Below, piece after piece: positions 58-36,900 of a stretch of 64,000 nt of DNA. This DNA comes from Bugula neritina (Eukaryota; Animalia; Bryozoa), in NCBI GenBank assembly GCA_964035545.1, contig OZ037766.1, positions 868,001-932,000 on the forward strand. Reading direction: 5' to 3'. Position numbers and translations under genes: made by a program. The notes under the pieces were generated by a model that saw only the letters and a program-made list of their open reading frames with translations, was not told the origin of the DNA and made no database searches. Numbering within the stretch: the stretch's first letter is position 1; every line of letters starts with the position of its first letter.

Positions 58-3000
58 ATTTTTGACTTGAACTGGCATAAGATTAGCATGAGTTTCTTGG
101 AAGACAGGGTTGTCCTCTACCTAGACTGTAAAGATGCTGGCACAGTGTTGTGGGGCGATGATGTGCGTACCCCAATCGGTACAAACGGAAACGTTTACCT
201 GGCCCAAAACAGCATGGACAAACCCACACAGGTACGTAGTGGCATCTACCTGCGATGAATATGCGACAACATTTACTTCTCTGCTATCTGCTGTTAAAAA
301 TCTGATTTTTTTAAGCAAAAATATTCCTAAGAGTAACAACTGTTTCTTCTGCATAGTAGTTGCATGGCAATCAGCTTTGACGATTCTATTTATTAACTTT
401 TGTGTTGATATTTACATGTGCGCAGATTGACCTGCAATGGCTGGTGATTCACTGCGACCCTTATCTCGCTGCCAAGGAGACGTGCAATGAGCTGCCTCCA
501 GTGATTGAAGACGAGCCTATGGACCAGCCCTGCGAGGAGCAGTGCCCAGCTGGACCACCCGGAAATGATGGAGCTCCTGTAAGTTCTCGGCCATGTCATG
601 TACATAGAGAATAGTATGTAGCATAAGGAGTTGTCTTCTATCTTATGTATCTATCTTATGTATATAGTGAACATTATGTAACATAAGGATTTGTCTTCTA
701 TTTCATAAACAATGGTTCTGGAAATTTATAAGTTTTTTAAGACTTCGCAAGCTTGAAATTTTATTTATTAGCTAATAAAAAATAGAAATTGAAAAATTTT
801 GTTGACCTTGACCAAACAGAAGTCAAGGTCACCTTAGTCGTGACATCATGAGTCATCATGTCTGCTAACAGAACTGGTTGTGCTAATTCTAGGGAGTAAC
901 CGGACCCATGGGTCCACCTGGTGCACAGGGAGAGAGAGGTGCAACCGGAGCACCCGGTAAAGCTGGACGTGATGGTGTAGATGGTGCACCAGGTGTACAA
1001 GGTAAACAGGGTGCGCAAGGATTGCCTGGACCTGCTGGTACTGAAGGGACCCCTGGCCCACGAGGAGATATTGGACCACCAGGAACTCCTGGTGCTATGG
1101 GCTTGCAAGGACCTCCTGGAGAGAGAGGAACTGAAGGTCAACCAGGTCCCATTGTGAGTTGCCAACTCCTGTAAAATATGTAATTGGTCATTAGTCATTA
1201 GTCATTAGTCATTAGTCATTAGTCTCGCTTCACTAACTTTGCCTATACTACACAAGTGCCAGTGCTGCTGGCTCGAAAGCTAAATGTTATAAACTGTCAG
1301 CTAAAACCCAATCTAGTATTCCTAGGTTGGTTGGCCTAAAGAAATAATACATAGCTGTTATAGCAGAAGAATTTGTGAACAAGTCAAACCTCCATCTTTT
1401 TACATAAACTGAATGAGACTATAAATAATTATTATTGTGTATGTTGTGTATGCACACTAAACAACTCACAGTTGAACACTCATTTAAGTTATGTTACTTC
1501 TGTTGGTTTTAATTTCTTTGTTTTATAAAAAACAACTCCAACTGACTATTGAAAACTTTATCAAAAAAATGTTGCTTTTACCTTGAATCTCATATTCTTT
1601 CAATAAGTTGAGTTGTTGTGTGACATTGTTTGGTCATGTGACATAGGGGGCACCTGGAGAGATGGGAGTTGAGGGTATGCCCGGTGCACCTGGTGCTCCA
1701 GGTGTTGGTGCTCCCGGAGCTCCTGGACCAGAAGGTAAGATGGGACCCGAGGGACCAATGGGACCTGCCGGAAGAGCCGGCATTCCAGGTCTCAATGGAT
1801 TTGATGGCAAGAAAGGAGAGAAGGTGAGAATAAGTTTACTGGGTCATTAGATTTACCCTGAGTTATTACAAGCTCTTCCTAATTGTAAAGAGTTGTCTCT
1901 CCTCTCAGTAGTTTTTATGCAAATTGAAATTTTTACTGAAGGCATTAATTTTACTATTAATTCATGAAAACTAAGCATGCAATTTTAGTGAAAACATCTA
2001 CTGTGTACAAAATAATAAATATTGAAAAAAAGTATTCCGGCAGTATTATATTATATCATTTAGTAATGTTTACATTTTTATTTCAGTAATACCATGTTTT
2101 ATATTTTGTTGGATTTATTTGCTAAAGTATTGGTTGTTAATTAATTTTAAACTAAGCTGTCATAGACTCGATAAGAATTAGTCTACTAGTAAAAGTATAA
2201 TAAACTCACTTGGAGTTGTCCGTCTTGCATAGTAATATCCTCCACCTCAGAATTCACTTCTCTACGTTGTTCTAAAATATTGTTTCAGGGAGATCGCGGA
2301 GCAGAAGGCAAAGTAGGTCCAGCTGGACCCGAAGGTCCACAAGGGCCAGCAGGACAGCCCGGACCCATGGGCCTGATTGGTCCAGCCGGTAACCCAGGAC
2401 CCCAAGTGAGTAACTTGTGCATTTAGAAGTAACCTGTGAACAAACTAAGTCTTCTAGGAGGGGGGTGTTCCACTCAACCCGCTGCTTCATACAAACTTGC
2501 ACTGTTTATAGTGCAATGGCAAATTTTTCTAAAACAAGTTATGTAGATGACGCAATATAAAGCTACATATTTTAACTGGCTGTTACCGGAATGCTGTCCT
2601 AAAGTTAGGAGCCAATTAACTACATAATAATTGTAACCTTTCATTATAACAACTGTATTAATAGATATACATTTTACATATATATGTATATAATACTTGT
2701 AACAATATATTTCTATATGCAGGGTTCCCCAGGACAACCTGCCCCAGCTAGTCAAGCCAGAGCTGCAAGACCTGGACCACCTGTAAGTCCTGTCACTTTG
2801 AAATAGAAATGACAACTCCTAAGAACTTTCCCTACCAACCAATTATCTCTATCTGTAGATAGAATGCTAAGCTTTGTATCTATAATATATTAATAGAGAA
2901 TAATATATAATATACTATAGATAGTAATATATAATATACTATAGATAGTAATATATAATATTGATAGATAGTAATATATAATAATAGATAGTAATATATA

Positions 3001-6000
3001 ATATTATAGATAGTAATATATGATATTAGTAGATAGTAATATATAATATTAAAAGATAGTATTATATAATAATAATAGACAGCAATATATGATATTATAG
3101 AAAGTAATATAAAATAATAAATAGTACTATATAATATTAATAGATAATAATATATAATATAAGCAGATATAATGCACTAAAACTTTAGTTAGGATTTCCT
3201 CTATACATTGTAGGGAGAAAGAGGTTTGCCCGGAAGCCCTGGAATTCCAGGACCAGCTGGTTTGGTGGGCAGAGAAGGCAGACAAGGAGCACCAGGTCCT
3301 AAAGGAGATACCGGCTTACCTGGATCCGTGGGTAGACAGGGTGCTCGAGGATTTCAGGGAGCCTCTGGCCCACCGGTGAGTTTACTAGGAACACAGGCTA
3401 CACAGAGACTGTGGTAGTTGTCTGCACATGGCCTGGAGGTTATTTAATGAAAGTTCAGACAATATATAATATGTAACGGTTGTGTTTTGTTATTTTTAAC
3501 TTTTTCAAATGAGAAAAACTCGAGCAAATTTACATGGTGCGGCAATGTCAGAGTGACTGGTATTAAGTCTTGCTAATATTCAGTAGTGTGTGTAGCAGAG
3601 CTCCATGAATATTAGTACACGATACTCTATCTTTAGGGTATGCAAGGATCGAAGGGACAGCGCGGAGAGACTGGAGTTCAGGGAAACAGGGTAAGACTGC
3701 AGCAAATATTATGTACTTTTTAATTTGCTTATTTAGTCACTTCAATGCCTTGAAAACTTTGAGTATGTCATTATAAAAATCAGTTTCAAATTTTATATAA
3801 TAGTAACACTTTTTCTAATATATGGAAATGCTAATCTAGTGGGAAACCGGTTGTGTTTTACTCATGCTACAATGTATATGTTAACAGGGAGACAAGGGAC
3901 CAATCGGTAACCCTGGCATGCCAGGCATACAGGGTATTCAGGGAGACATGGGAAGAACCGGAGATAAAGGAGCTCAGGGAGATGCTGGTGTCGAGGTACG
4001 GAGTTTGAATCTCAACTCTAAACTATTAATAGCTTTAAGTTAAACATTTAAATCATATAAATAAATATTCAGCCATTATTTTGCTGCACCAAACTTACTA
4101 TAATATTCTTTTAGTAAATCTCATAATAAATAATTTAGCCAAGGTGCAAAAAAACTAGATTAAAAATGAAAGAGTTTGATTATCTAAAACAACTTTCATT
4201 ACTTCAAGATTTTCAAAAGCCTCTGAATATCTCGTATGATACAGAAATATCTTTTGTCAGGTCAGCAATTTTGTTATTTCCCAAAGATTTCTCTATTTTT
4301 CGGTCAGCAAAAATCATGAATGACAAATTGACATACAATTCACAATGTCTATGTTTATCTGCTAAATATATGGATTAAGAAATGTTAATCCAAGCAGATA
4401 TGAGTGTTAATTAAATCATAAGTATTGATAGTTGTATGAATTTATTCCCAATGGAGTTATATCCAGTCAGCTGTGTGTGTTAGATCAGACAGCATTCTAT
4501 ATTTATGAGTCATAACTTAATTATTTGCTGCCGTTACTACTCTTGGGCCTAAAGCTGCCACAACCATACAAATTTGGTGTCCAATAAGTTGTTTGCTCAA
4601 AATGTGAATGTTTAAGCATATGAAACACATTCTATAAGGATAAAGATCTACTATTATTAAAGTCTTATTGAAGTTCAATTCATACGCATATGTTCTCTAA
4701 TGTCAAGTTTTTAATACTAAATTTTAGAGCACTATAATAAAATGTAATATTAGGAACACATAAATTGCAACATTTAAGTCTTCTAATTGAATTTAATTGA
4801 ATTTATTTGAATTGAATTTAGAGTCAATCTTTTGTCTAAAATCTAAAAGATTTTAATAATAAAATAGTACTAGATTCCCTTCTCTACTGTATAAAGCCAC
4901 AATGCTGCAATTATAGAAATTAAACTGTTAATTGACTTGGCTGCTATAAATATGCGTTTCATTAGAAAGATGGAAATGGAAGAATATTTAGTTTAAGCAT
5001 CAGATATATTGTTGCCATGTAGGAATGTTGTTTACAATCAGCCTACTGAGCTGGGAGAGTTTTTATTCCAACAACTAAACTTTTAACTCTTTAATAATTT
5101 TCTGGGTGTGTAATACAATTTGGTTTGGGGCTGAGTTTGAATTTTTAAAGAATTGTTGGAACTACTTTATTTCCTATAACTATATCAAAAGTGTGCGATG
5201 GCTACATACACATGAAACTGAGACGTGTTATGAGTGTGGCACAATGATCTCTATATAATGCAGTGAGGCTGCACCTCTAGCAATACGAATAGAGGTCAAT
5301 TCTTCTGCAGACGATGACATCTCTTGAGTAACCATTCATTCAGATTTTTATCTAATCTCATTTTTGGCCTCAAATATTAATAAATGACATTCATTGCCAT
5401 TATTCAAACAGAGAGATGAATAATTACGCCGGGACAAACACTTCTGTTGTCAGCCGCTCTCCATTCTATTATGAAACTATGGTTATTGTTTGCTCATTTT
5501 ATGGATATTAATCTTGACCTGACTGCCCCACAATGCACTCCCCTCGCTTCTCGGCTTTACGCTCGTCAAACTCTATAAACAAACAAGGGAGCCAGTGCTC
5601 GAGTAATCGTGCTCACTCATTACACCATTCCTCCTAATAAACTCTTAAAAATAACTCTGAAATACGAGAAGTTGGGTGAATTTTGAGCGTGAGTCGGTAG
5701 TAGAAGATTGGTAGATGAAGAATTCTTCTTATTCAAACTTGTAATTCCATTCACAGAAATTATGAATTTGCTTTGCGAAGCCAATCCCACATTGTTTGGT
5801 AGGAGTTATGAAAAAGTTACATCGCATCCTAAAGTCGTGAGCAAATTCACTCCTTTGAAAAGACAAACAGCCTCGCCGACCAAGTTTAAGTTTTAATGCA
5901 ATTAATTGTGTCGTCTCTGAGCAGTGATTTATTGTCACACAGAAAGCAGCTGCGTCAGCGGCAGCCGCTGTCTACTCACCTGCCAATATATATGTTAAGT

Positions 6001-9000
6001 AATACTATGGTTTGTTTCAGGGACCACCCGGACCACCTGGAGCCAGCGTGAAGGGCGCCCAAGGAGCACCTGTAAGTCTTCTCGTCACATTAAATAAAAA
6101 AACAATTTAAAATTTCCAAAACCTTTTGAATGTGCCTACTGCTTAAAACAATGTACTATAATAAAATTATTTCAGGGCCCTATGGGACCAATCGGAGCAC
6201 CCGGGACACCAGGAGAAGCCGGCCCAATGGTGAGCATTCTTAATTTCTTTCTAATTTTAGTTATTCTGGTTGTAAATTATGTTGGCTAATCACTTTATTG
6301 ATTTATTCACTTTATTTCTTGCTTTCAACATTCCCTCTTTGATGTAAACTATTTCCCCCTCCACAAATATGCTCTGGGGTGAACCTCACAATATTCTGTG
6401 GAACGTGCTGCTGTTACTAACTAGCCAATGAAATGAATGAAGTCTTTTTCACATTAGAATGCACTCAATATGTGGAACAAAAATACGGAGTTGTATGGGA
6501 ACCGTGTCAGTTGCCTTCTATTAATCATAAATAACTTGTCAAGCATTGAGTCAAATCGCATCTAGCAGACGTAACAACTTTGTCTTGGATCAGTTAGCCA
6601 GTGAACAAATTAGACGAACTCATGACTTGAGAAATATGAGTGTCTGGTGTTGAGATGTGGATAGGAAGTCTTCTGCTTCTATGCTGCCTCTTGGAAGTCA
6701 TCACTTCTTCGTCGGTTGGATTTAACGAAGACTCTACACAGTACAATGGGAAGCCAACGAGGACTACGGCAGGCAGTAAGGCTAGACATTTGTGTAGGTT
6801 CCGGTGGGAGTGGGAGAGTATGATATACGGCGACCTATGTCTGCCCGCCAAAGCTTCATTGCGCTCTCGTAAAAAATCTTCTTCATTACTTCGACATAAA
6901 CATCGACATAAAAGTAAAGACTACAATGACGCTCCAAGTTCAAGGTCGTCACAATACAGCAGTGATCTCCTCAGCGAGGACGAGAAGTCAGTGCTGGGTC
7001 TACTAGGACCTCCTCAGTACCAAATGGACGCTCCAACGTACCTCTATAAAACAGTGAGTTCATGTTTTCTTAATGTTTGTTTGCAGGGCGCAACAGGATT
7101 ACCTGGAGCACAAGGTTCAATGGGTAAAACTGGAGATCCAGTAAGTTTGTGAACTTTAACTTATTTCCCTTCTTATATACGGGTGGTTAGGACACCCACC
7201 CGCTTTCAGTATGCTGTAGACTGTAGTTCCTTGCATGCCTACTCACAGCTAGGTTACTAGCAGCTGACTTTTGATGATGCAGGCAAAATATTTAACTTAC
7301 AGCTATCTTATGATTCAGAGTCAGCTGTTAAAGGCAGCATATTTAGTAATAGTTCACCCAACTAGTGAAGTAAAGTGAGCATTATTAAACAGCCAGCATC
7401 TGTTTGTATAGCAGAGAATATTATTCAATTAAGTTTTGTGAAACAATTAAATGGCAGGAAACAGCCCAAACTGTCTAGACGCTGAGCTGTGAGCAGAAGT
7501 CTCTGAATTGTATATTTGCTCAAAGCCGTAACAATGTAATCAGATTTGGAAGTACTCCCTAATATATAGGAGCAAATCTCCTGCATGTGAACAACTAAGC
7601 AAACACCCTTGTGTTTATTTATTCCAAGTCATCTCAGCAAGGGGGTATTACGGCCCCTGTGGCCCCTCATGAATATTCAGCCATTGTTACAGTTAATTAT
7701 GTAGCATGGCATCTATTTACCTTTCCTTATCACCAGCTTTCCGGTTGTTTGGATGTTTGTCTAACCTTACCTGTTGAAATAGCTCCGTTAATCTCACTAT
7801 TTCTCTTCTTGTTGGAGAAATTTTCATCTCTCTTTACACGATAGATGAATTAGTTATTCAAGTGCAGTCAGACAAAATGTTGCCTAGCATCATGTCTAAT
7901 TATATAAGCCACGAAATCTGCGTTTTTTCAATCAATTGTTTCTGGTTCACCCTCCTTGCTGAAACAATGTCCAACTTGTTAGTCTGTCAAATTGTATGTA
8001 AAATGTACTTGGTGGGGTGCGAGTCAACTTTCACCCCAATATAACATAGTTTACACTAAAACTAAGGCTATCTTATTAGAGGCAGGTCTCATCATTGTGA
8101 TCTCGTAGATATGTTAGAATTCAACCTTTCATCTCACTACACTATTCCATGTAAATATATTTCTTCTTACTAAATATTCACCTCTTAAGAATATCTCTAT
8201 TTTATTTACTCTGTCAAGTGTGAAATGCAGTACGTCATGCTGTCATATTACTGCTGCCTATGCTGACCTTGAGTGAAAGGTATGCTGCCATAGAACATGC
8301 AATCAAATCTCTCTCTACAGCTACACACCTCATAAACATCTTCAACAGTTTGTAGTTTCGGTTCAGCTGAAGGCATTGTAGTAGCTGTAGATATCAAGCT
8401 GTATAGAGTAATAATTAATAAACATAAGTTATGACAAGTAATAGATGTACTAGCAGCATGTACTGATTCAGTAATATATGAGTAAATGCAGCTCAACTAG
8501 TTGTGTTTATTTCCTATGAAAGTAACACATCGAAATGAAAACAATAAGTTTTTATTCTACCAAGTTTTTATGATAAACTCAGTTATCTAAACTCCAAGTC
8601 AGTTTCTGAAATTTACGGCTCAAAGAATAGTACTACTTCCTTTGATGTTTCTAAATATAGATTCAAATTATGCCATCTTAGATAACCCATTTTATTCGCT
8701 TCTCATGCTGTGAAAGTTGATACTGCATCACCGCATTTTATACTAATTAAAATCTGGGGCCTGGAGTACTGCTGCTAGGCTGATGTGACTTGTGTATTAC
8801 TACATCTCTATACACATACTACGTATAATATAGGATACCTCAATATACTCAATACAAGAGAGCAATATCATAGCATGTTTAGTGGCATGTTTCACTAACA
8901 ATTCAGTTTTACAACTTTGTACAAACGTGTACTAATACTAATGTGTTTTACTCATTCCCTTTGAGTATTTACTAAATTTTCACACCCGCACTTAGGTATT

Positions 9001-12000
9001 ACACTTCTTCGTATGTCATAAAGTTAATATCCCCCTCTATCTAACAAACAGGAGCTGTGATATATTTTATATTGTACTTTGTCTACCGTGTAACTTGTCA
9101 GTGTTGCTAGTTCAGTTGTTCTACTCCTAAGTGAGAATATAGCAGACGAGTTGTTGTTCAGTGACTGACAGTAGAGTAACTAACAGACAGTGGGACTCAT
9201 AGATATAACTCACAGATAGCCTGAGTACCATGTAGTAGCCTGTTGACCATGTAGTAACCTGTTGACCTTGTGTTGTGTTGCTTTAGGGTATGCCCGGCTT
9301 CCAGGGACCCCGCGGAGAAACCGGACTGATAGGACCACAGGTAAACTTCACCAACACTGACATTCTTTCAGCTTTACCTGTTTATTTGACAGAAGTCGTT
9401 TGATCAAACCCAAATTTCAAATATTTGCTAATTTTAGTTTTTGTCTTTTAACAGTAGTCATCCCAAATAGTAACTAATTAATACTACATAATGTTTAGAA
9501 ATTATGAGTAACTATTATGGTCCCTATAATATGTTAAATCAATTGGTTAATACAATTCTAATAGTTTCATCACGTGAAACTCAAATAATTATGCCAACAT
9601 AATTCAAGAAGGCAATCGTTTATAATTAAGAAATGTTAAATAAAGCTCTATTGTACCTCTAACTTTATTTAATTTTAAGTTTATAATAATTATAATCAAT
9701 TGAATATACCCTTTAAACTGCCCTTTAAACTACCATTAACCAATTACTCTAAGAATAGATTAACATTTGTATCAATTTACATTGATTTTCCATTTATAAT
9801 GAACTATCATTTATTGTTTTCAACTAGGAAATAGTTTGTGGTTAGTAGACTATAAGATAGCATCTCAAGCTTTTCCATTTCTGCATTGTTTTGAGCCCTT
9901 ACAAGTTGGGACAATGGAGCATTTGCACCTTTCAGTTGGTGCAGCAACCACCACTTGTACTCAACTTTGTTTTATCTCCTTTTAAATCTCTCGTTGATCT
10001 CAGTCGTGTGCCATTGAGCTCTACTGTCTGTCTGTTATGTGTAGGGAGAGAAAGGTGACAAGGGAGATGATGGAGATCGTGGACTGCCCGGTAGAACTGT
10101 AAGTCATTTCAACTCTGAAACACAAAAAGCCAGACACAGCAGCAGCTGGTGAAGTTTTCTTAAGTCTTTCATTTGTTTACAAAATTTGTGTGGTTTCTGT
10201 TTTCAGGGACGCGTCGGACCAACTGGAATTCCTGGTATTCCAGGTTTAGATGGTGACAGAGTAAGTTATATAGATATCTGTTTATTTGCCATCACAACAA
10301 TAAGAAATCAGTTGGAGAGGAAATTCTTCCAAGTTTCATATATATTTTTTTATTTCAACCATAAAAGATGAACAACATTATTTTACTTTTTCTAGCAAAA
10401 TAATAATTCTATCAGCATTTACCTGCTCTCATTTCTATCTTTCTTTCAATTACCCATATTGTTTATCAAATTTTTAAGTTTAAAGTTCAAGTAAAAAGTT
10501 TAAATGCATATACTTATGCTTCCAAAAAACTGTTAATAATATGTGATATGGTGTGTATTAAGTTATACAGATTAGAAAATATTACACTTTATATTAAAGT
10601 ATAATCATATTGTATTATATTGCTATAGAATACAATATAGTACAATGTTCTCGTAATATGTGTTATATTGTATTGTTTTGTATGATAACAGGGAGAACAG
10701 GGTGTAGCCGGTAACCCCGGAATGGTGGGTCCACCAGGTAAGGATGGTACTAACGGACCAATGGGAATGCCCGGACCACCCGGCTTCCAGGGACCTCGCG
10801 GAGAGGAAGGAGCTACTGGCCCTCAGGTACGTTACCAGCTACAGTAACCTTGACCTCTGTTCTTCTAATAACAAGTTAACACGACATCTAGCGGGACGCG
10901 TTACGCCCTCCCGTCTAGAGTATTACTCAGTATCATAGAACCAGACTGCACTGCGTCTTTCTGTTATTTAGCTTTACTTTACATGTTTTAGGGACCACCC
11001 GGGCCACCAGGACCCCCAGCCATAGTAAGTACACACACTTGATTAGAACTCAAGCTATTTGTACTACCAGAATATTTCTCTTTGTGTTGTCATCACTTTG
11101 AATAAGTTAGTGTATGCAGATTCTGTGTTGTTTTAGTTGACCGAAGGAGGACAGCTTATTGAAGGACCAATGGGCCCTCAGGGACCAACTGGACCCCGCG
11201 GACCCACTGGAATGGTGAGTTGACCCTTTGAACTTCCAATCAGAGCAATCTCTTTTTCATAACTTAGTAGAGTATAATATGAAAATGTTGCAATGTTCAT
11301 GTTTCTTTCATCAATCAAAATACAGAACACTAGTATTGCTAATATTATGGTGTTTATACAATATTTTGCAATACATTACAATACTTTGCAATTCCTGTCA
11401 TGTTCCGAAGTTGCTAACAATGTCCTTGAACTTGCTGTATAGAACGGAGAGAGAGGACCTTCTGGTATGAGAGGTATGCCTGGACCAACTGGTGCTTCTG
11501 GAGTCAATGGTATGCCCGGCCCACCCGGACCTTCAGGTCAGAGAGGTTTCCCCGGACAAGCCGGACCTCCCGGACTACCAGGTTTACCAGTAAGTAGTTT
11601 CTCTCAAAGTTAATAAACTTTTATAGAAAAATTCAATTCAAAACATAATTGAGTAGCGAGTATTGTAAAGAACAATACTAAGTGTTGGTGTTAATTGAAT
11701 TAACAGTTTGTTTATGTTACGTAAACATTGTCAATAGCCTCTACCCTTTCTACAAACAAGAATGCGTTGAGTGCAGAAATAAACGGCAGCAAGTCAGCGG
11801 TATCAGTGCACACACTAGATGTATTTCCTAATCCAGACAGCGCTGTCAACATTACAGCTGCCAACAATTGCTTGTTGTTCGCATAATGATAGCAATATTC
11901 TCCATACAACAATCTGATGAACACACACCTTGTGAAGCTGTCAGATTACACACACCTTGAGAGGCATGTCACTCACACACCTTGTAATCCTGTCACCTGT

Positions 12001-15000
12001 GGACAACATGTCAAAGTACAATGGGTTTACCCTAAACGCACAGTCCACATGATTACATGATCAGAGGGTGCTAGAGTGCACCTATATTGATCCCTAATTC
12101 AGTCTCAGTCAATGAAACAGCAGCTGTAGTCTACTATCTGAGATGCCATGAGTAATTATTCTTGCATCAACACCTTTGCCTATTGTTATCCCTCTGGTGT
12201 TTTGTGTCTATGAAAGTTATAACTTTAATTGTGGATCCAACATCTAAGTAGCATAAGGTCTACCTAAACCAGGTGGTCTAATAAATTGTGTTAAATTATA
12301 TTTGGTAAGACTCTATTGTACACATTGTGGAATGTAGGCACTATATATAATACTAAATGAGATGCTACTACAGTAATGTTACTAGCTCTATTATACTACA
12401 CAGTCAATAATATTTCACTCAAATATCTTTTCCTATCATTCTTTGCAGGCTGAGGTATAATTTTGTATTCCCCTTCAACTCGTGCATGTCTTAGAGTTTA
12501 GAAGTTAATTTACTCAACATACGCATGTATTACCAGTATAATAGTTTATTTATTTTATTACATTTATACTCTGCTTTAGTCTAGTGAACCTCTTTCTTGC
12601 TTCTTTCCAAATTTCCGTAGGGTAACTTGTTTTCGTAATTACCACAAAAATAAATTTCAACAAAAAAAGATCAGTAATTGGAAATCTGCATCTCAAGTTT
12701 ATTTTATGTTCAGCTTAAAAATAGATGTGGTAAAATTTATCAAAAACTAATAATAGCTGTGATAGTCTAAAAACCCATTTTTCTAGAGTTAATTTTAATT
12801 GTTACCCCACCACATTTAAAGCCATAGCGTTGGCACATTCTATTCAACTTTGAGTACAAGTTAAATAAATGTTATTCCAAGTTGAACAAGTCTTTTATTA
12901 ACAATGTTACTAATTAGTAGGTCTAATTACTGTGTAGACTAATATATCCTTTGCTATTTATACCTATCTCTTTCCATTCTATTCTGGCTGACTAAATTAT
13001 GCCCATCAATCTATTATTATACTGTTGAATGTATTTGTTTGTATTATCCTCAACAATAATTGTAGGGAGAGGCTGTTTCAGTTAACGAAGTAAGATCTAT
13101 TTGTGCCAAGGTGCTCAGAGGTGCGTATTTTCCATATTTAGGGGGTGAACCGATGCAATAGTGATGCTAGGTGATGCTAAATAATTTTAAATTACTTTAC
13201 CTTAACATAGGATTGTAATAGGTCAGCAGTATACTATTATACAATTCAGTTTTAATGCCATAATGATTTTAGGTGCTGTTTTTCTTACGCCCCCTACGTA
13301 TGTACCAGTTTCCTTTCATCCACCCCTTACTACAGGGAGTTGATTTTCTTGTGGTCTGTTTGTTTTCAAATTAATTAGTAACTGGATATATCATTATCTT
13401 AAGTGGAGCCTGTCTTCGGTCTTCTTCATCAATATGTTGTATTTATGGGTGTTTGTTGTTTAATTAATTACTTCTTTAACTCATAACTTATAACAACAGC
13501 CACAAATATCAGCCATTACACATCTGCGGTTCTAATAAATACAATAATTACTTAAACTGAGAAATGAAAACAGACAGTGGCTTATAAACTCTTGAGGCAG
13601 CCAGCTAATCAAGAGGTATATAACTTTAATTGGTGTATAGAGGTAATTAGTGGGCCTCTTTATTTTAAGGACTAAAGCTGCATTCAAGATTAATACAATA
13701 ACAAAGTTCAAGTCAAAACAACAATTATTAACACAAGTTTGATGTAATTAATTACCATAATTCTTTGTACAAGTCATTTGCTAGACTTGTCTCCCCTACA
13801 CATGTCATATTTGTGGGCACCTGCAATGCTAGCTGCACTCAATCACCTGCCCTTGGATGTCATTAGCCCTTTCCAGTTGCTCACTCATTACTCTGTATTG
13901 ATTACTCATTTCTATTGAGTTGAATCACTTCTTTAGACTCAGGGGTGGTCTGCTATGTGCTCGCTGAGAGAAAATACAATGCCGTGTTTATTATTAACAT
14001 TGCTGTTTCATTCCAACGAATTGCCATTATTGTTAACAAATTTACTTTAGATTAACATGATATAAGTGGGCTCAAACAAAATATTGCTGGAAATAAATAG
14101 AAAACTTGTCAACAGTAGAACTTGGAGAGAACCCAATATGAACAGCAGTGCAATGTTGCTGAAACAGTAAATGTTCAAGACTTTTAAGATGATTCCACTA
14201 ACTATTCATCAACCAACATGTCTTGTGATATTTTCCCGCTAGACACTCTAATTTATTCTGTCTGATTGTAGAACAAATTGAAGACTTGACAGCCAGACTA
14301 CAAGGTCCACAAGGTCCACCTGGAGCTGGATATCCTGGTGCTCCTGGAGATCCTGGACCGCAAGGTGCTCAGGGTAAGTCAACAAGACCTGCTATATAGG
14401 ACTATACAGGATATAGTATTTCCATGTTGGTAGGAATTGTCTGTCCTATTCTACCCCACCTATAACTACATGCATACATGTGTAACTCAACATAATATTT
14501 TACCTGCTTTGCATATTTCTATAACTATAATTATGTGCTACATAATATTATTTATTAATTATGTTTTTAGGTGAGAAAGGTGACCGCGGGTTGCCTGGAG
14601 AGATGGGATTCATGGGAATGCCTGGAGTACCTGGACCTCAAGGTAAATCCGGTTTGAAGGGAGATCCCGGCGAGAGAGGACCACAAGGAGCAGAAGGAGT
14701 TGGTAAAGATGGCCCAGTTGGTCCACCTGGACCCCAGGGAGCCCAGGGTCCACCTGGTATTGGCCTACCTGGCCCTCAGGGAGATCTTGGACCACGAGGC
14801 ATGACCGGAGCTCCCGGACCAATAGGCATGAGAGGTCTACAAGGTCAGCTTGCTGTCGGATGTCTTTGCAGATCTGATCTGATATTTTGCTGTTATCATT
14901 TTCATTAAGATTTACTATTTTCACAAATTATTCAATTATAAAGGTTCATCAGCTGTTGAAGTTGTTGCCTTAGTGGAGTAGCTTATTGAGTTGATCCACT

Positions 15001-15102
15001 ATGACTGTCTGTTGGATTTTTTCAGGACCTCCTGGATATTGCGCAAGCTGCAGTGGCGGATCTGCCCCCCAGGCCCCCATCAGTGACGGACCAAAAGGCT
15101 AA
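58..15102 (+). CDS. FACIT-type collagen (collagen IX/XXI/XXII-like alpha chain); 5' end lies outside the window; 23 coding exons visible
   Basis: Phase-consistent GT-AG exons: 58-231, 426-578, 893-1153, 1647-1823, 2289-2405, 2723-2782, 3214-3375, 3637-3690, 3888-3995, 6021-6071, 6176-6229, 7087-7140, 9287-9340, 10045-10098, 10207-10260, 10692-10826, 10992-11024, 11137-11214, 11443-11589, 13066-13120, 14272-14373, 14571-14843, 15026-15102 (TAA). TSPN/LamG end ([18 protein letters not shown]; [19 protein letters not shown], cf. COL9A1 NC4), interrupted Gly-X-Y with many 54/108/162-nt exons, NC2-like helix [18 protein letters not shown]-terminal GPPGYCASC...KG*. Confidence 0.92.
2905..3160. repeat. 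Degenerate AT-rich minisatellite (about 22-24 nt, ATAGATAGTAATATATAAT..)
   Basis: Roughly 11 imperfect tandem copies in a collagen intron. Confidence 0.8.
6655..7053 (+). CDS. Putative alternative first coding exon of the collagen (signal peptide + novel N-terminal domain)
   Basis: In-frame TGA at 6637, ATG at 6655, [19 protein letters not shown] hydrophobic leader, 133 stop-free codons in an AT-rich intron, GTGAGT donor at 7054 in phase 0; the frame also reads straight into collagen exon 7087-7140; TCAGTT initiator-like motif at 6590. Confidence 0.7.
12449..12454 (+). CDS. Candidate 6-nt microexon (Ala-Glu) in the collagen gene
   Basis: Long pyrimidine tract, then TTGCAG|GCTGAG|GTATAA; phase 0/0 matches the flanking exons. 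Confidence 0.3.
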
Positions 15103-15168: not shown

Positions 15169-15174
15169 AATAAA
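15169..15174 (+). terminator. Polyadenylation signal, collagen 3' UTR
   Basis: AATAAA 67 nt after the stop codon (another at 15678). Confidence 0.45.
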
Positions 15175-28145: not shown

Positions 28146-29792
28146 GTGAAGACAACCCTGTATCAGAGTCAGTGGATATCAAAGTGAGCAACCAACCCTC
28201 CCGTATGACAGCGAGTCTGAGCATGGAATACTCCCGGCACATGGATATGGTTGCCGACAGGAAGCCGATACTGCCTCCATACTCTATGAGTGCCGGAGGA
28301 ATGCTGCCTGGTGGGTTCCAAGGTCTGCCCCACCTTCACGACCAGTCTAATCGTATGTTCCTGTCGTCATACGCTGCCGCAGCACATAGAGGTATGTATT
28401 GCTGTCTGTGTGTTTGGCTGTCTGTGTGTCTGTTAGTGTAGTGTAGGAGTAACGGTGTGACAGTCATGGTCACGAGGGAACAGTACTGTAGGTCTACAAA
28501 CAATGGACGCCATTTCCTGTCCCATCTGATGCACGTGTGAACGATATGCCACCTGCAGTTTTGTGGTAGACTGAGCATGCCCAGTGAGTCATATGCTGGG
28601 ACTGAGCATGCCCAGTGAGTCATATGCTGGGGGTGGCAGGACCAAGCTGGACGCTGTCCAGTGCGTGATTGTCCAGTCATTCTACCGCAGTGTGTGTGCC
28701 TGTAGCCAGCACATGGTGGCTGCAGTATGATCTACTTTCTGCATAATTTGTTGTATTTTGTTGACATTTACCATGAGACTAGGAATAAATTGTATTCCCT
28801 GAGAGACTGAGGTCCACATAGCTCTAGTGAGGGTGCCTCTACCTCCTCCCATACTTCTGTTTATATTTATTACATAACAGCTGGATTTGTTGTAAACAAA
28901 CTCATCAACATCAAAGTTCAAGCTGAATGGTTCCATACCCAGACTAGTGTTTATTTATATTATGTGTTATGTGTTGTGTGCAGCTACTGGATAATGGAAA
29001 TTGACAATTAATAGAGAAACTGAATTCCCTGGCCGTAGCCCCAAGCACTATGCATATTTCTACTCTGTAATAACGTAACACTTTGAATAGCAGCTTATTG
29101 ATTGGTTTGTATTCACTTCACAGACTAACTGATAGCTGTAACTCTCTCCTCCTTGTTTATCATATCAACTTACTGAATATATTATTCTTACGTGTAATTA
29201 GTCTTGTTTATTATTTATTTACTCGTTATTTGTTATTATTTTATACTCGTGGCTTATGCTAGGAATCTACATTTTATTCACACATAAAAAGGAAATTAGA
29301 GCTGATATGGTAGAGTTGTACTGTTACAGTTTGTTAATGCTGTGAGTGTTGCACGTTTTATACATTGTATAGCAATAACACAATATTACATTGTGTTATT
29401 GTCTACTCGTGGAATAATACAACTACACGCCTGAGAGATACCAACTACGTTCAAATTTCACTGAAATTCGCACGTTTCTACTGTTTCACTGCCACTGCAC
29501 TCTTCTATTTGTATTCTGTGCATTCATTTCCTAACTTATTTCCCTGCAGGTAGAAAAGTTTAGTCTGTTGTTTCTAAGTTAGTAATGTGAATACGCTGTT
29601 TCAGGAGCCCTTCCCTACGACTTTCACGGTCATATGAACCCAGGTAATCTCAACCCTGCACCAGCTAAGAGCCCCTCTCCCCCTCCCCGCGTCTACAAGC
29701 CCTGCGTGGTGTGTAATGACAAGTCCTCAGGCTATCACTATGGAGTGAGCTCCTGCGAAGGCTGCAAGGTGGGTTGGTACACAGTCTATGTT

Positions 29793-29882
<90 letters not shown>

Positions 29883-30920
29883 GACTGTAGAAGTTTACTC
29901 AAACTCTAAATCTATTGATTCTATTCCCAGTTGACAAGAACCTATGTTTTGGTGTTTCTCCAGAGTAGAAACTTATACAATATATTTCAATGACCTTAAT
30001 GGGGCAGCATTTGAGGTGACAGAGGCAGCGTGTAGTGGCAGAGGCAGCACGGGTAGAGATGGTGGGAGAATAATGTATTCAGTGTTGCTACTGCAACTTT
30101 CCACCCACCTGAGGTTTCATATCTCACTAGTCATTCCATTAATAATAACATTGCGCAACAATTAAGCCCAGCTCCACTGTACGTAGCATCTGCAGGCCTG
30201 TAACGGCTGGAAGTGGAATTAATAGCTTCTGTTCTGATTATCTGGCTGTTGGAGCCTCAGCTAACCTCTGCAGTTGTGTGCAGACTAGGAGATGGTGTTG
30301 TTAGTGTTGTTACAGTTAATCTATCAGGATTTGTGTACTGCAGTTGGTTAACTGGAGGATTATTAAGCCTCTTGTTGGTTAAAAAGTACTTTGTTAGCTT
30401 ATTTACTGCTGCATTGTTGTGTGGAGAATCTCATTGTTAATAAGCAGCCACCTAAATGGTGTCCATCTTCTCAGTACGCTCTGTATGGGAAGGTAAGGTT
30501 GTGGAACAGCCTTAAGTAAACACTAAACCATCAAACTGAGGTTTGTTTTTGTTGGGAGGGAAAATGCTGCCACTTTCCTTACTCAGCCACCGCAGCAGCT
30601 GAACAATGAAAATATGGGCCATAGAATGTAACATTTGTAAGTCAACACTTGACTGCAGCCTTTCACGGTTCAAGTACCACTCTGTATTCATAATCCAACT
30701 TCTTGTTTTTCTTCTGTTCTCCGTATATAATATAATATATTTGCTTGTTTATGATAAATTGCTAGCTGCTTGGATTCACACAACATCCTTTCATGTGACT
30801 ATGTTGTGACTACAGCTAGTACTAGTACTACTACTAGTACTACTACTACTACTACTACTACTAGTACTACTACTACTACCGCTACTACCACTACTGCTAC
30901 TACTGCTACTACCACTACTG

Positions 30921-30953
<33 letters not shown>

Positions 30954-33900
30954 TTACTACTGCTACTACTACTGCTACTACCACTACTGCTACTACCACT
31001 GCTACTACTGCTACTACTGCTACTACCACTACTGCTACTACTACTACTACTAGTACTACTACTACTACTACTAGTACTACTTGTACTACTACTAGTAATG
31101 CTACTACTACTACTACTACTAGTACTACTACTACTATTACTACCACTGCTACTACTATTACTACTACTAGTACTACTACTACTAGTACTCCTACTACTAG
31201 TGCTACTACTACTAGTAGTACTGCTACTACTGGTACTATTTTATTCCGTCCTAAAGACTGATTATGTGGCTAAACCAGACCAAACCTGGGGCTGGTTTAT
31301 TATTTTAATTACTTTATAATAGTATTACTTTTCTTAAGTGGCCTCCTTCTCAGAGCACTTATAATTCTCATTAATCTCTCTGTCTCTCTGTCTCAAGGTC
31401 ATTGTCTCACCTCTCTTTACCTAGTAACTCTCCTTGTCTCACCTAGTAACTCTCCTTGTCTCACCTAGTAACTCTCCTTGTCTCACCTAGTAACTCTCCT
31501 TGTCTCACCTAGTAACTCTCCTTGTCTCACCTAGTAACTCTCCTTGTCTCACCTAGTAACTCTCCTTGTCTCACCTAGTAACTCTCCTTGTCTCACCTAG
31601 TAACTCTCCTTGTCTCACCTAGTAACTCTCCTTGTCTCACCTGGTAACTCTCCTTGTCTCACCTGGTAACTCTCCTTGTCTCACCTAGTAACTCTCCTTG
31701 TCTCACCTAGTAACTCTCCTTGTCTCACCTAGTAACTCTCCTTGTCTCACCTAGTAACTCTCCTTGTCTCACCTAGTAACTCTCCTTGTCTCACCTAGTA
31801 ACTCTCCTTGTCTCACCTAGTAACTCTCCTTGTCTCACCTAGTAACTCTCCTTGTCTCACCTAGTAACTCTCCTTGTCTCACCTAGTAACTCTCCTTGTC
31901 TCACCTAGTAACTCTCCTTGTCTCACCTAGTAACTCTCCTTGTCTCACCTAGTAACTCTCCTTGTCTCACCTAGTAACTCTCCTTGTCTCACCTAGTAAC
32001 TCTCCTTGTCTCACCTAGTAACTCTCCTTGTCTCACCTAGTAACTCTCCTTGTCTCACCTAGTAACTCTCCTTGTCTCACCTGGTAACTCTCCTTGTCTC
32101 ACCTGGTAACTCTCCTTGTCTCACCTGGTAACTCTCCTTGTCTCACCTAGTAACTCTCCTTGTCTCACCTAGTAACTCTCCTTGTCTCACCTAGTAACTC
32201 TCCTTGTCTCACCTAGTAACTCTCCTTGTCTCACCTAGTAACTCTCCTTGTCTCACCTAGTAACTCTCCTTGTCTCACCTAGTAACTCTCCTTGTCTCAC
32301 CTAGTAACTCCTTGTCTCACTAAACTCCAGAGTAAAGGGCTGGTATGTATACCTGTCACCTACCTGCTGGTATGTATACCTGTCGCCTACCTGGTGGTAT
32401 GTATACCTGTTCAGAGTTGTGTTCTCTCTCACTGCAGGGGTTCTTCAGACGAAGTGTGAACAAGAACATGACGTACACGTGTCAGAAAGACTCCAACTGT
32501 GAGATCAACAAGGTGACGAGGAACAGGTGCCAACACTGTCGTCTCAAGAAGTGCTTCGACAAGGGCATGTCCAAAGAAGGTGCGTGTGCTTCCCCCCCCC
32601 TTCCCCCCTACAGCCTTCTTCAGACTCTCGGGCTACTGCCTGCTGAATAGAACTCTGGGTCTACAGACCAGTAAAGTGTCTCTATTACTAGACTGTTGAA
32701 TGTAGGCCAGAGTATTAGAATTGTTGTGATTTTTAATGTTCCATATTTTCACCGCACAGCAGCACCTCCATTCTCTGTCATGTGGCAGCAGCCAGCAGGC
32801 TAGATATGCTCTGCAGGTATTTCCATCCTTTGTTAGGTTTCTATTGACTCTGTATGAACACTAAAATAGACTGCACTGGCAACCTGCCAACACTCATCAA
32901 CCCGACATCCGGTTTAACAGAAAGTGTAATAATACGAGCAGCAGGGAACTGTTTGTCAAACGAAATGTCAAAGCCAAGGGGTGCTGTTTACATTTGCTGT
33001 CAGTTGAAAGGTCAACACTCGCTGGCTTGCTGACTTTACTGCTGCATGCTGACTGTTTCCAGGCTTCACATATGAATAGATTTCTTATTCAATGTCTGGA
33101 ACAGTTACTAATATCCACAGCCATAAGTTATCCACTTGAAATAATTGATACACAGTGATAGAGTTTATCTGGAGGTGTTTGCGTCTTCAATATAGACCAA
33201 CTTTATGTAGATGTTTGCCTTTCAGCTTCTCTCATCCCCTGATTAGTTATTCTCCCTCAGTGTGTTGAGTCTCTCTCTCCTGTTGTAGCCGTCAGGAATG
33301 ACAGAAAGAAGAAGCCGCCTGTCGCTGACGCTGAAAAAGAAGACAACAACAACAAGAAGGCGGAGCCAGCAACTTTCCTCACCGAGCGAGACGAACACCT
33401 CATAGGAATCATATTAGATGCGCACAGACAGACACTGCCCGGCGGACCCGTTCTGCCTAAAAAGGTAGCTGGAGATTCTAGTCTACCACAATATCCCACA
33501 ATACCCCACAATATCCCACGGGTGGTATGGGTTGGGGACAGATGTACTCTAGTGAATGTTGTAAACACATGTTTACTGGCAATTAGCAAGTGACTGCAAC
33601 TCGTGTTGTTTTTGATCTTACAGCCTGAGGGCTTTGGCTTCACTTCAGTTAACTTACAGCTTCACTTCAGCTAACTTACACATGTTTTGAAGTTGATTCA
33701 GCAATGATAACTTGTTGTGTCATCTCCAAGAAGTAAGTTGGTTAATGAGCCTTTAACTCTTCATTAGTGGCCAATAGAAAGGTTTCAGCATGAAATAACT
33801 TTAGTTACTGAATCATATTCATTAGAAATAAAAATATTGGAAAAGCAAATCCAAACAATTTGTACTGAAAGCAATATTTAGATACTGGTTTAAGAGTTTT

Positions 33901-36900
33901 TGGAATACATTGGCTATTGTTCCAGCAATGAAACTGTGAGGGTAGCTGGTATTAGATAGTGTATTTTACTCCAACATTTCAATATTCGCAGCTTTTAGTT
34001 CTTTACAACCAGACAAGTATTTCAACTAGACCACCATGTAGCAGTAGTAAGACATCTTTGCTTGTGGAGGTAGTAAAGAAGTTCAGCCCTTCATTGTTAT
34101 CTATTATTAGTCACTCTTCTAACGGAGTGAACAGTTGAATTAGTGAGTCGTGTTACCAACTTCACGGCTCATTTGAGTTGTGGAATTGCGCTTGGGGACA
34201 TTTTAGTGCAGAGTTAAATTTCCTCATGTTACTCGTGGCCCAGAAATTGTTTGCATCTGAGATGGGAGGAGCTTAAACTCCCTCTTCAAATATCCTTGTC
34301 AGAGTGTGGGGATAATTCTATAAGCAGCTCTAAGTTGGGGGTGACTGAGTGCAGTAGTTTGGGGGTTCCAATCAAACATTGTATGTATTTTACCTTTCTG
34401 TTATTTTGTACCCGGCTCTACCTCTCTCTAGTTGTGTATCTCATGTGTATCGTGTATAACTATCCTCTCTCATGTGTCGCAGGTGAACGACTGCCCTAGT
34501 CGCAGCCCCTCCGTGTCATCCCCAGTGCCAAGCACCTGCTCAAACATGACAGGCGAGTCATCTGACAGACCGAGTCCCGACACAACCACTCTGGACAGTA
34601 TGGGGGGTCTGCATAGCCCCTCGACCCCCGGCAGCAACTATGGGTCACCATCTCGGCGGCCTGGCTGGGACAACGTGGATGAACTCAACTCGGAGGGGAT
34701 AGTCAAGGTGGTGGAGTTTGCCAAGAAGATACCACGATTTCTAGAGCTCAGTGTAACTGATCAGATAACTCTGCTGAAGGCAGCGTGTCTAGAGGTCTTG
34801 GTAGGTAGATCTTGTTATCTCTCCTCGTGTCACTGAATACTGTGGGTGTGGCTTTAGACCAGGACTAGTTTCCTGTCCGCTCCAGTGTCCACTGAGCTGA
34901 TTGGTTACTTGTTGAATGAAGATGTCTAGTCATTCTATTTTCATAGGATTTGTACATTGATTATTTCCTGTATTCAGCTCATTCAATACGACTCAAAATT
35001 ACTTCATTTTTCTCATGAAATTGCAGATTCTACGGTTGAGTATGAGATACAAAGCTGCCGAAGATATGCTCACCTTCTCCAATGGTGTCAGCATTTCTCA
35101 GGTGGAGATGGAGAAGGGAGGGTTCGGGGCTCTGGCGCAGACCATATTCAAGTTCTCCGCCGCTCTTTCTCAGATGAACCTTGATGAGAAGGAGTTTGCG
35201 TTACTCTCGTCCATCTGTCTGCTTTCTAGCGGTGAGTATGTCTGCTATACAGTCAGTATACTTCTGCTATACAGTTAGTATACAACTGCTATACAGTTAC
35301 TATACGTCTGCTATACAGTAAGTATACGTCTGCTATACAGTTAGTATACGTCTGCTATACAGTTAGTATACGTCTGCTATACAGTCAGTATACTTCTGCT
35401 ATACAGTTAGCATACGTCTGCTATACGGTTAGTATACGTCTGCTATACGGTTAGTATACGTCTGCTATACGGTCAGTATACGTCTGCTATACAGTTACTA
35501 TACGTCTGCTATACAGTCAGTATACGTCTGCTATACAGTTACTATACGTCTGCTATACAGTCAGTATACGTCTGCTATACAGTTAGCATACGTCTGCTAT
35601 ACGGTTAGTATACGTCTGCTATACGGTTAGTATACGTCTGCTATACGGTTAGTATACGTCTGCTATACGGTTAGTATACTTCTGCTATACAGTTAGTATA
35701 CTTCTGCTATACAGTTAGTAGACGTCTGCTATACGGTCAGTATACGTCTGCTATACGGTTAGTATACGTCTGCTATACAGTTAGTATACGTCTGCTATAC
35801 AGTTAGTATACGTCTGCTATACAGTTAGTATACGTCTGCTATACAGTTAGTATACGTCTGCTATACAGTTAGTATACGTCTGCTATACAGTTAGTATACG
35901 TCTGCTATACAGTCAGTATACGTCTGCTATACAGTCACTATACGTCTGCTATACAGTCAGTATACGTCTGCTATACACGTCTGCACATCAAACACATTCT
36001 CTAAAGCCATACATCAAATAGCTGATTGTTAAGCTGATGTGCAATGTTTAAGTTGCCAATGAAGTCTCACTTGATATTGACACGTGTCATACTGTAGCCC
36101 AACTCCCTCACCCACCTTGTTCTAGACAGCTGTGTGTGAGAGTGAAATTCTAGTATGCTATATGAGTGAAGGTTGGTGGAGTTGCCAGGTTTAGACGCTG
36201 TGACTGGAACTGTAGCTGTGATTGTAGACCGATCTGGGTTAGAGAGTAGCGTGAACGTGGAGAGAGTGCAAGAGCCGTACCTGGTGGCGTTGCAGCACTA
36301 CACCCGACACCGCCACCCTAACAAACCGCACCTCTTTGCTAAGTTACTCATGAAACTGACAGACCTACGGAGTATCAGTATTAAAGGTGAGTGTTGCAGG
36401 TTATCTCCCCTTCATGTGTGCTTTATTGTCAGAGGTTAGGTTCTCCACTCTAGGTAGATGGCGTTATGAGTGTCTTAGACACAAATAGGATTATTTTAGT
36501 GTTTTGGAGTTTTTGCAAGGATTTCCTCCTTGTATAAATGAACTGGCAAATTTTGAGGACATTTCTATTGCACTAAGCTATGTGATGACAAGTTTTCATG
36601 GATGATTGTCAGATAATGATGGCCGTGCATACTTCACTGGCTGGCACATGCTTTAACAACTGCAATTATTAATCCTTGTATGTCATTTTTTGTGTTTTTC
36701 ATACCTTAAAGCATACAATCCTCTCTTGATAATTGAAAGATTATTCCTTTTGTTATTGCAATAGTGTTGTCATTTGTTTTGTAATGCAGATCAGGGTTTA
36801 TCCAGAAATTTTGTCTGTGCCTTCGTAAAACATAAATATACCTGGATTGCAAAGTTGTCTTCCCCATGTATCAGATCTGCTGTATGTCGCGTGATGTTTA

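Follow-up and report, generated by a model that had tools for sequence, protein, structure and literature searches.

Can an invertebrate collagen gene begin a second time, from within one of its own introns? The question is raised by a 64,000-nucleotide stretch of DNA from the bryozoan Bugula neritina (assembly GCA_964035545.1, contig OZ037766.1, positions 868,001 to 932,000 of the forward strand), the whole of which is called the window here and is numbered from its first letter. A collagen gene on the + strand extends from 5′ of the window edge to about 15200, and the intron between two of its Gly-X-Y exons, 6176-6229 and 7087-7140, contains an open reading frame (ORF) at 6655-7053. An earlier note, made from the letters of the window, had claimed that this ORF is the first exon of a hidden second collagen, with its own promoter, a signal peptide and an unrecognized N-terminal domain. 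Comparison with related loci leads us to a similar view: the region of about 6500-7053 is probably an alternative first exon, driven by a promoter located in this intron. Judging from the same sequences, a second, shorter collagen chain is very probably produced from this gene as well, headed by a new, basic N-terminal segment.

The ATG at 6655 starts 133 codons, which are closed by a phase-0 donor, GTGAGT, at 7054. Read in order, these codons specify a hydrophobic leader, a loop bounded by two cysteines (C47-x14-C62), a basic/His stretch (residues 70-88) and a Ser/acidic stretch, each at the place where it had been described. The in-frame stop reported upstream of the ATG is likewise present (TGA at 6637-6639, 18 nt 5′ of the ATG), as is the phase-0 donor in frame with the next Gly-X-Y exon, across a gap of 33 nt. 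Only 0.2 ATG-initiated ORFs of at least 133 amino acids are expected in Markov-simulated 64-kb windows, and GC content is 47% in the ORF versus 36% in the flanking intron. A paralogue search of the B. neritina genome returned the locus itself only, so an origin of this single-copy exon from a transposon or repeat was rejected.

The ORF is less hidden than the earlier note supposed, for GenBank holds its read-through version, 6655-7152, as the hypothetical protein EB796_018657 (KAF6023044.1). This entry derives from an older B. neritina contig that ends about 600 bp 3′ of the ORF and was deposited as a single-exon ORF; what the deposit lacks is the link to collagen. Another database entry, P0034 (212 amino acids, from a Logan contig of B. 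neritina), was considered as a spliced product and rejected as a genomic read-through in which TGA is taken as Trp. It is an artefact of a non-standard code on a eukaryotic contig, and passes two stops into the intron.

A word-based protein search with the ORF gave three matches, namely EB796_018657 and two proteins from metagenome contigs at 40-44% identity. When a three-sequence profile was run against 1.84 billion representative proteins, 13 relatives and nothing else were recovered, each of 143-209 residues and each a short ORF call on genomic or metagenome contigs. Nine related loci were compared (L002, L003, L009, L014, L016, L018, L019, L020 and L021), with L018, whose ORF call failed to translate, taken in for its flanking exons and upstream motifs only. 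Where flanks are available, the ORF sits between orthologues of exons 6176-6229 and 7087-7140; the former were found 5′ of the nested ORF in L003, L009, L014, L016, L018 and L021. The distance from the ORF to the orthologous 54-bp Gly-X-Y exon is 31-84 nt in every locus. L009 (17 kb) has the same layout of helix exons on both sides of the nested exon, L016 carries the upstream tail of an NC4/TSPN-type head and most upstream helix exons on one contig, and the shared downstream exons are conserved in L009 and L014.

Cross-species blastn matches are confined to exons, and the nested exon is matched in seven of seven database loci with E values (down to 1e-31) that equal or better those of the helix exons. 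The pairwise proportion of synonymous differences (pS) is saturated at 0.8-0.9, compared with a proportion of nonsynonymous differences (pN) of 0.12-0.21 in the core and 0.26-0.40 overall. Because the position is conserved, blastn matches are restricted to exons and pN is far below the saturated pS, these comparisons identify 6655-7053 as a real coding exon under purifying selection. A chance ORF was rejected by the conservation and by pN versus pS. Conservation in relatives and dN/dS had been proposed as checks on the ORF, and conservation and pN versus pS came out in its favor.

We next consider the 5′ end of the exon. In all 13 relatives the initial Met is followed by a hydrophobic stretch whose Kyte-Doolittle score over 10 residues peaks at 2.4-3.4, which agrees with the claim of an own ATG and a secretion-type leader; hydrophobicity is kept while the leader sequences have diverged between relatives. 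Seven of nine loci have in-frame stops 6-27 nt 5′ of the main ATG. Moreover, all nine loci (B. neritina and eight related ones) have an upstream ORF (uORF) of 2-8 codons that starts 14-28 nt 5′ of the main ATG; its end falls anywhere from 13 nt before the first base of that ATG to 4 nt past it. In B. neritina, L003, L002 and L019 the TGA of the uORF lies exactly 1 nt 5′ of the main ATG. Among the other ATGs of these loci, 8% show the same configuration, a figure that serves as a guide only, the criterion having been set post hoc. Since a uORF is meaningful only in a scanned 5′ leader, its presence supports the ORF as a start exon, and its conservation looks like translational control of a matrix gene.

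These start features also bear on the possibility that the region is a cassette exon internal to the long chain. With its phase-0 end, exon 6176-6229 could be joined to an acceptor inside 6655-7053, where in-frame codons ending in AG are available at 6741, 6753 and 6780 (the first being CAG at 6739-6741). The conserved part would then be a non-collagenous insert, and the ‘leader’ would be a pyrimidine-rich acceptor region; fibril-associated collagens whose triple helices are interrupted (FACITs) do carry non-collagenous interruptions. However, a cassette needs neither an ATG nor a hydrophobic leader nor an adjoining uORF, and all of these are kept in every species despite the divergence of the leader. 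In addition, the B. neritina CAG is without an in-phase counterpart at the corresponding place in L003. We therefore regard a cassette exon as very unlikely, although such an acceptor might be used now and then.

At the 3′ end, the exon stops in every locus 3-5 codons past the motif YQMDAP, at an in-frame GT(A/G)AG donor in phase 0, and Gly-X-Y sequence follows directly past the exon join. The mini-intron in between measures 31, 33, 33, 34, 36, 39, 53, 56 and 84 nt across B. neritina and the related loci. It contains in-frame stops in L003, L014 and L019 and shifts the frame in L002, L003 and L016, and thus must be spliced in each of these loci for the helix to be reached. Read-through keeps the frame in B. 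neritina and L009, such that either route, splicing or read-through, would yield a chain composed of leader, domain and helix.

Of these orthologous GT…AG introns, several measure 31-39 nt (7054-7086 in the window, L014:3108-3140, L016:9358-9391, L020:786-816, L021:1213-1248 and L009:6923-6961). These animals appear to splice introns far under the usual metazoan minimum, L014 and L016 having no read-through option.

The deposited gene model implies a different reading, in which an independent small gene nested in the intron encodes a peptide of about 135-165 residues, which is secreted without ever becoming part of a collagen chain. EB796_018657 is indeed a single-exon ORF, and all database relatives are short ORF calls. 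Yet these calls are read-throughs into the intron, with tails and stop positions that are not conserved and no conserved stop codon among them, and the older B. neritina contig broke off soon after the ORF. Conserved instead is the phase-0 GT donor, always at the same short range 5′ of the Gly-X-Y exon. We consider an independent gene highly improbable.

By its exon content, the host gene is a collagen-IX-like FACIT. Searches used exons singly, and the sole PDB match of the exon at L008:9410-9685, just 5′ of the window, is 2UUR (collagen alpha-1(IX) NC4, E = 2.2e-9). Pfam scans of single head exons gave no match, as expected because the single pieces are too short. Gly-X-Y exons are numerous, with Pfam Collagen matches; several have the classic 54-bp size, and short non-collagenous stretches lie between them. 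The helix is interrupted at 2722-2790, 6021-6074, about 11020-11160 and about 13066-14300, the last being an NC2-like segment of about 30 residues whose first part lies at about 13066-13121 and whose second part opens the exon at 14272. COL1 consists of Gly-X-Y runs at 14570-14704, 14711-14764 and 14771-14851 with two 2-residue breaks between them, and two imperfections of this kind in COL1 are a FACIT family trait. FACITs have a cysteine site, GXCXXXXC, where COL1 meets a short NC1. The last exon carries GYCASC, an instance of GXCXXC, which is the variant FACIT cysteine site of echinoderm collagen-IX-like genes (PMC10381214). No COLFI-type (fibrillar C-propeptide) exon was found between the collagen 3′ end and the next gene. 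The label of a FACIT with TSPN, already given in the earlier note, holds because of the NC4-type head, the interrupted helices, the two COL1 imperfections and the GXCXXC end. A literature search on bryozoan FACITs found nothing.

The downstream part of this gene is complete on its own, with leader, helices, NC domains, stop and AATAAA, and the locus might accordingly comprise two tandem genes that share no exons, a TSPN-collagen ending before 6590 and a second collagen beginning at 6655. Several observations are at odds with this arrangement. Exon 6176-6229 has a conserved GT donor, and the interval from it to the ATG contains neither a stop codon nor a terminal exon nor any conserved coding sequence. 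Gly-X-Y continuity and phase suit a 6229>7087 join. Furthermore, L009 and L016 preserve the layout, each with upstream helix exons on that one contig, and L016 has the tail of the TSPN-type head there too. The chance that two separate genes are present seems to us very slim.

The intron 5′ of the ORF contains three non-coding blocks that are collinear between relatives. The first, TCTGGGGTGAACC, recurs with 1-3 mismatches in L003, L002, L014 and L018 and is weak in more distant loci. The CCAAT-ATGAATGA block, putatively of the NF-Y type, is also conserved in relatives: the pattern CCAATSNNATGAATGA has a single occurrence in the 64-kb window, where 0 are expected, and one each on the + strand 5′ of the ORF in L002, L003, L014/L015, L018 and L021, which represent five other species-level loci. 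Of the AT-rich block, TATTAATACAAATTRAC is found with 0-1 mismatch in L002, L003 and L018 and with 3-5 mismatches elsewhere. No TATA box or initiator (Inr) could be fixed upstream of ATG 6655. With promoter activity deduced from sequence conservation, the coding exon might be reached from the upstream promoter or be no longer expressed in B. neritina, the blocks serving as an intronic enhancer or splicing element. This is most improbable: a long transcript that included the exon would run into stops in frame before reaching the ATG, B. neritina has kept the ORF intact and constrained, and the conserved uORF fits only a scanned 5′ leader.

All of these rivals are weaker than an alternative first exon because none of them accounts for all of the conserved donor, the conserved start features and the missing terminal exon. 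For the alternative first exon, we propose the following sequence of events. Transcription would start somewhere in about 6440-6630, and the uORF ending 1 nt before ATG 6655 would probably throttle translation, through re-initiation or leaky scanning. From ATG 6655, a signal peptide and an N-domain of about 110 residues would be made, the latter with a 16-residue disulfide loop, an RHKHRHK-type stretch and YQMDAP. The donor at 7054 would be joined over the 33-nt intron to exon 7087, read-through being likewise in frame in B. neritina. With all downstream exons in common with the long form, the secreted product would count about 530 residues. Such a chain would be without the NC4/TSPN head, would be shorter by about 360 residues of helix, and would keep the NC2-like, COL1 and GXCXXC parts that assemble FACIT trimers, as anticipated by the claim that the C-terminal trimerization region is retained. 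We infer promoter activity, the actual splice, the start position, secretion and the role of the N-domain from sequence.

Several points weigh against an alternative first exon of this kind. No transcript-derived protein that joins the domain to the helix is among the 13 relatives. The related contigs are metagenome and Sequence Read Archive (SRA) contigs; L002 comes from a marine biofilm metagenome, a source consistent with fouling bryozoans. The signal-peptide call relied on heuristics only, namely hydrophobicity and small residues at -1/-3, and 33 nt is very short for an animal intron. The structure model of the N-domain, built from a 13-sequence alignment, is of low confidence, with a predicted local distance difference test (pLDDT) score of 59 and a predicted template modeling (pTM) score of 0.18. 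Finally, the TCAGTT at 6590 that the earlier note took for an Inr is present in B. neritina but is not conserved in aligned relatives, and a second TCAGTT lies at 6508-6513. Candidate elements of the internal promoter proposed there are the conserved collinear blocks, including the CCAAT block, with the uORF in the presumed leader. The second, shorter collagen lacking TSPN has the support of a conserved coding exon, leader, phase-0 donor and upstream elements; a start at 6590 has no backing from conservation.

The N-domain itself spans about 110 residues after the leader, and the pI of the mature domain is 8.5-10.5 in all relatives. Apart from P0014, the most divergent relative, in which the leader boundary is uncertain, each relative has exactly two Cys, located in the conserved loop, which is the most conserved part of the domain. 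Invariant among 13-14 sequences are C47, R48, W51, W53, E54, Y58, G59, C62, L63, P64, R80 and R84, and near-invariant are H81, H85, Y122, Q123, M124, D125 and P127, the last five of which are conserved at 90% or above. The domain is unrecognized, as had been claimed: Pfam returned 0 families for the ORF with and without read-through, a PDB profile search with the N-domain returned 0 matches, and the best ESM Atlas match (0.75, to an uncharacterised chordate cluster) is below the useful range. In the structure model, most of the chain is coil, with a leader helix (residues 3-19) and two short helices, suggesting that the basic N-domain is mostly disordered. These features together point to a new lineage-restricted extracellular domain with one disulfide loop, an RHKHRHK-type basic stretch and YQMDAP.

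Our best guess, by analogy, is that the N-domain forms a flexible tip that binds polyanions or glycosaminoglycans, like the basic NC4. For the NC4 domain of collagen IX, itself basic, binding of polyanionic matrix is the function generally assumed. The convertase cleavage once thought possible does not survive comparison. A furin/convertase site at RKKS was rejected because its residues vary between relatives (RKKS, RKRT, RVRS, RPKS, HSKS and RQKT). Tolloid/BMP-1 sites require Asp at P1′, and YQM/DAP resembles such sites; this motif, 8-10 residues before the helix, may thus be trimmed by a tolloid-type protease.

A bolder proposal, which we think rather unlikely, extends these elements to an entire clade of animals related to B. 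neritina, which are presumably bryozoans. Its members would have a two-promoter collagen-IX-like gene in which the inner promoter, gated by a re-initiation-type uORF, makes a truncated FACIT. The basic, lineage-specific Cys-loop domain would be a removable pro-piece cut at YQM/DAP by a tolloid/BMP-1-type protease, leaving a short telopeptide-like N-terminus, and either the pro-piece or the trimmed chain would tune the assembly of cuticle or skeletal matrix. The 31-39 nt introns would then be among the shortest that are obligatorily spliced in an animal.

Alternative promoters are known from other collagen genes. The nearest parallel is vertebrate COL9A1, in which a second, tissue-specific promoter gives rise to a chain that has the C-terminal exons in common but no NC4 (PMC12564068). 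The B. neritina gene belongs to the same collagen class, its head matching 2UUR only, and in both cases the alternative first exon would bring a new signal peptide. Unlike that of COL9A1, the proposed B. neritina start lies deep in the helix and would drop about 360 helix residues besides the head, its private exon contributes about 110 residues that form a conserved domain, and a conserved uORF and a mini-intron of 31-84 nt accompany the exon. The alternative exon of COL9A1 adds little beyond a leader. Independent origins of the two promoters seem the more likely.

In the multiplexin COL18A1, alternative promoters provide differing non-collagenous N-termini on a shared helix and C-terminus, and the variant domains (frizzled-like and DUF959) belong to known families. 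B. neritina differs in collagen class and in having an N-domain without a match in Pfam, among solved structures or in the Atlas. Collagen XII, a FACIT with N-terminal length variation, has a long XIIA and a short XIIB form (PMC5546929), but these arise by alternative splicing of one primary transcript, with no second start or new domain. The collagen-IX-like FACITs of echinoderms and hemichordates have a TSPN head only (no vWA or FN3), several short helices and GXCXXC (PMC10381214). They share the GXCXXC variant with B. neritina, and the N-domain profile search of 1.84 billion proteins matched no annotated echinoderm or other proteome. We know of no alternative start exon described for these genes.

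As judged from sequence, one non-vertebrate collagen gene may therefore yield two N-terminally different chains from two promoters. The mechanism is already known and its place is new; no new kind of biology is involved. The comparisons give support strong enough for the annotation to be corrected, in which an orphan ‘hypothetical protein’ now stands beside fragmentary collagen models. The locus could also be a compact model for studying control of a matrix gene by a uORF, ultra-short animal introns, and whether the use of a second promoter by collagen-IX-type genes is an ancient or a convergent trait. The features of the collagen gene and its nested exon are collected in Table 1.

Table 1. 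Features of the collagen gene and the nested exon, in window coordinates.
Feature	Position	Strand	Remarks
NC4/TSPN-type head of long chain, tail	exons 58-231, 426-578	+	remainder 5′ of window
Gly-X-Y exon of long chain, 54 bp	6176-6229	+	phase 0, GT donor; donor must skip nested exon to reach 7087
Non-coding block TCTGGGGTGAACC	6373-6385	+	first of three collinear upstream blocks
CCAAT-box block CCAATGAAATGAATGA	6425-6440	+	230 nt 5′ of ATG; candidate promoter element
TCAGTT (6508-6513), then AT-rich block TATTAATCATAAATAAC	6508-6535	+	candidate core-promoter region, putative function
TCAGTT, Inr-like in earlier note	6590-6595	+	present
uORF, five codons MSVWC and TGA	6636-6653	+	ends 1 nt 5′ of main ATG
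Start codon and hydrophobic leader (predicted signal peptide)	6655-6720	+	likely cleavage after small residues of TSSS
Cys loop C47-x14-C62, CRFxWEWESxIYGDxC	6793-6840	+	L63, P64 (invariant) next, at 6841-6846
Basic/His stretch	6862-6918	+	
YQMDAP motif and final codons of exon	7018-7053	+	
Mini-intron GT…AG, 33 nt	7054-7086	+	in frame and stop-free in B. neritina
First shared Gly-X-Y exon, 54 bp, predicted for both chains	7087-7140	+	Gly-X-Y continuity with 6229; phase 0 with donor after 7053
Shared Gly-X-Y exons	9287-9340, 10045-10098, 10207-10260, 10692-10826, about 10992-11024	+	
Short non-collagenous linker and helix	about 11137-11217	+	further helix exon 11446-11589
NC2-like exons	about 13066-13121, about 14272-14375	+	
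COL1	about 14571-14843	+	two imperfections
Last exon	15026-15102	+	GPPGYCASC, then 16 residues, stop; AATAAA near 15170

Other features were recorded in and around the collagen gene. AT-rich tandem repeats, with units such as ATAGTAATATATAAT and TAGTCAT, occupy 2880-3160 and 1190-1225 in collagen introns. A protein-kinase-like gene lies 5′ of the B. neritina collagen (L007:9361-9660 and L008:334-666), and a weak Pkinase match is found 5′ of the orthologous collagen at L016:1234-1470, which suggests that the kinase-collagen gene order is conserved between B. neritina and L016.

On the 3′ side, the collagen gene is followed on the + strand by a nuclear hormone receptor gene at 29586-36436. Its ligand-binding-domain exons fall in 34432-36436 (Pfam Hormone_recep), and zinc-finger exons near 29586-29700 and 32336-32450 were read by eye. 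The spans 30758-31316 (+ strand) and 35236-36029 hold a long ACN-type microsatellite that yields Thr/Ala-rich or Leu-rich open frames, as well as tandem repeats of about 60 nt in introns of the receptor gene; all of this is probably non-coding low-complexity DNA. At 52364-52771 (+), a 135-residue ORF without a Pfam match has the N-terminal sequence MDKSLDDII followed by RGG repeats, recalling the start of an Aly/REF-type export factor. Lastly, an intron-less ORF at 62420-63850 on the - strand encodes a Shaker-type voltage-gated K+ channel of 477 residues with the Pfam domains BTB_2 and Ion_trans.

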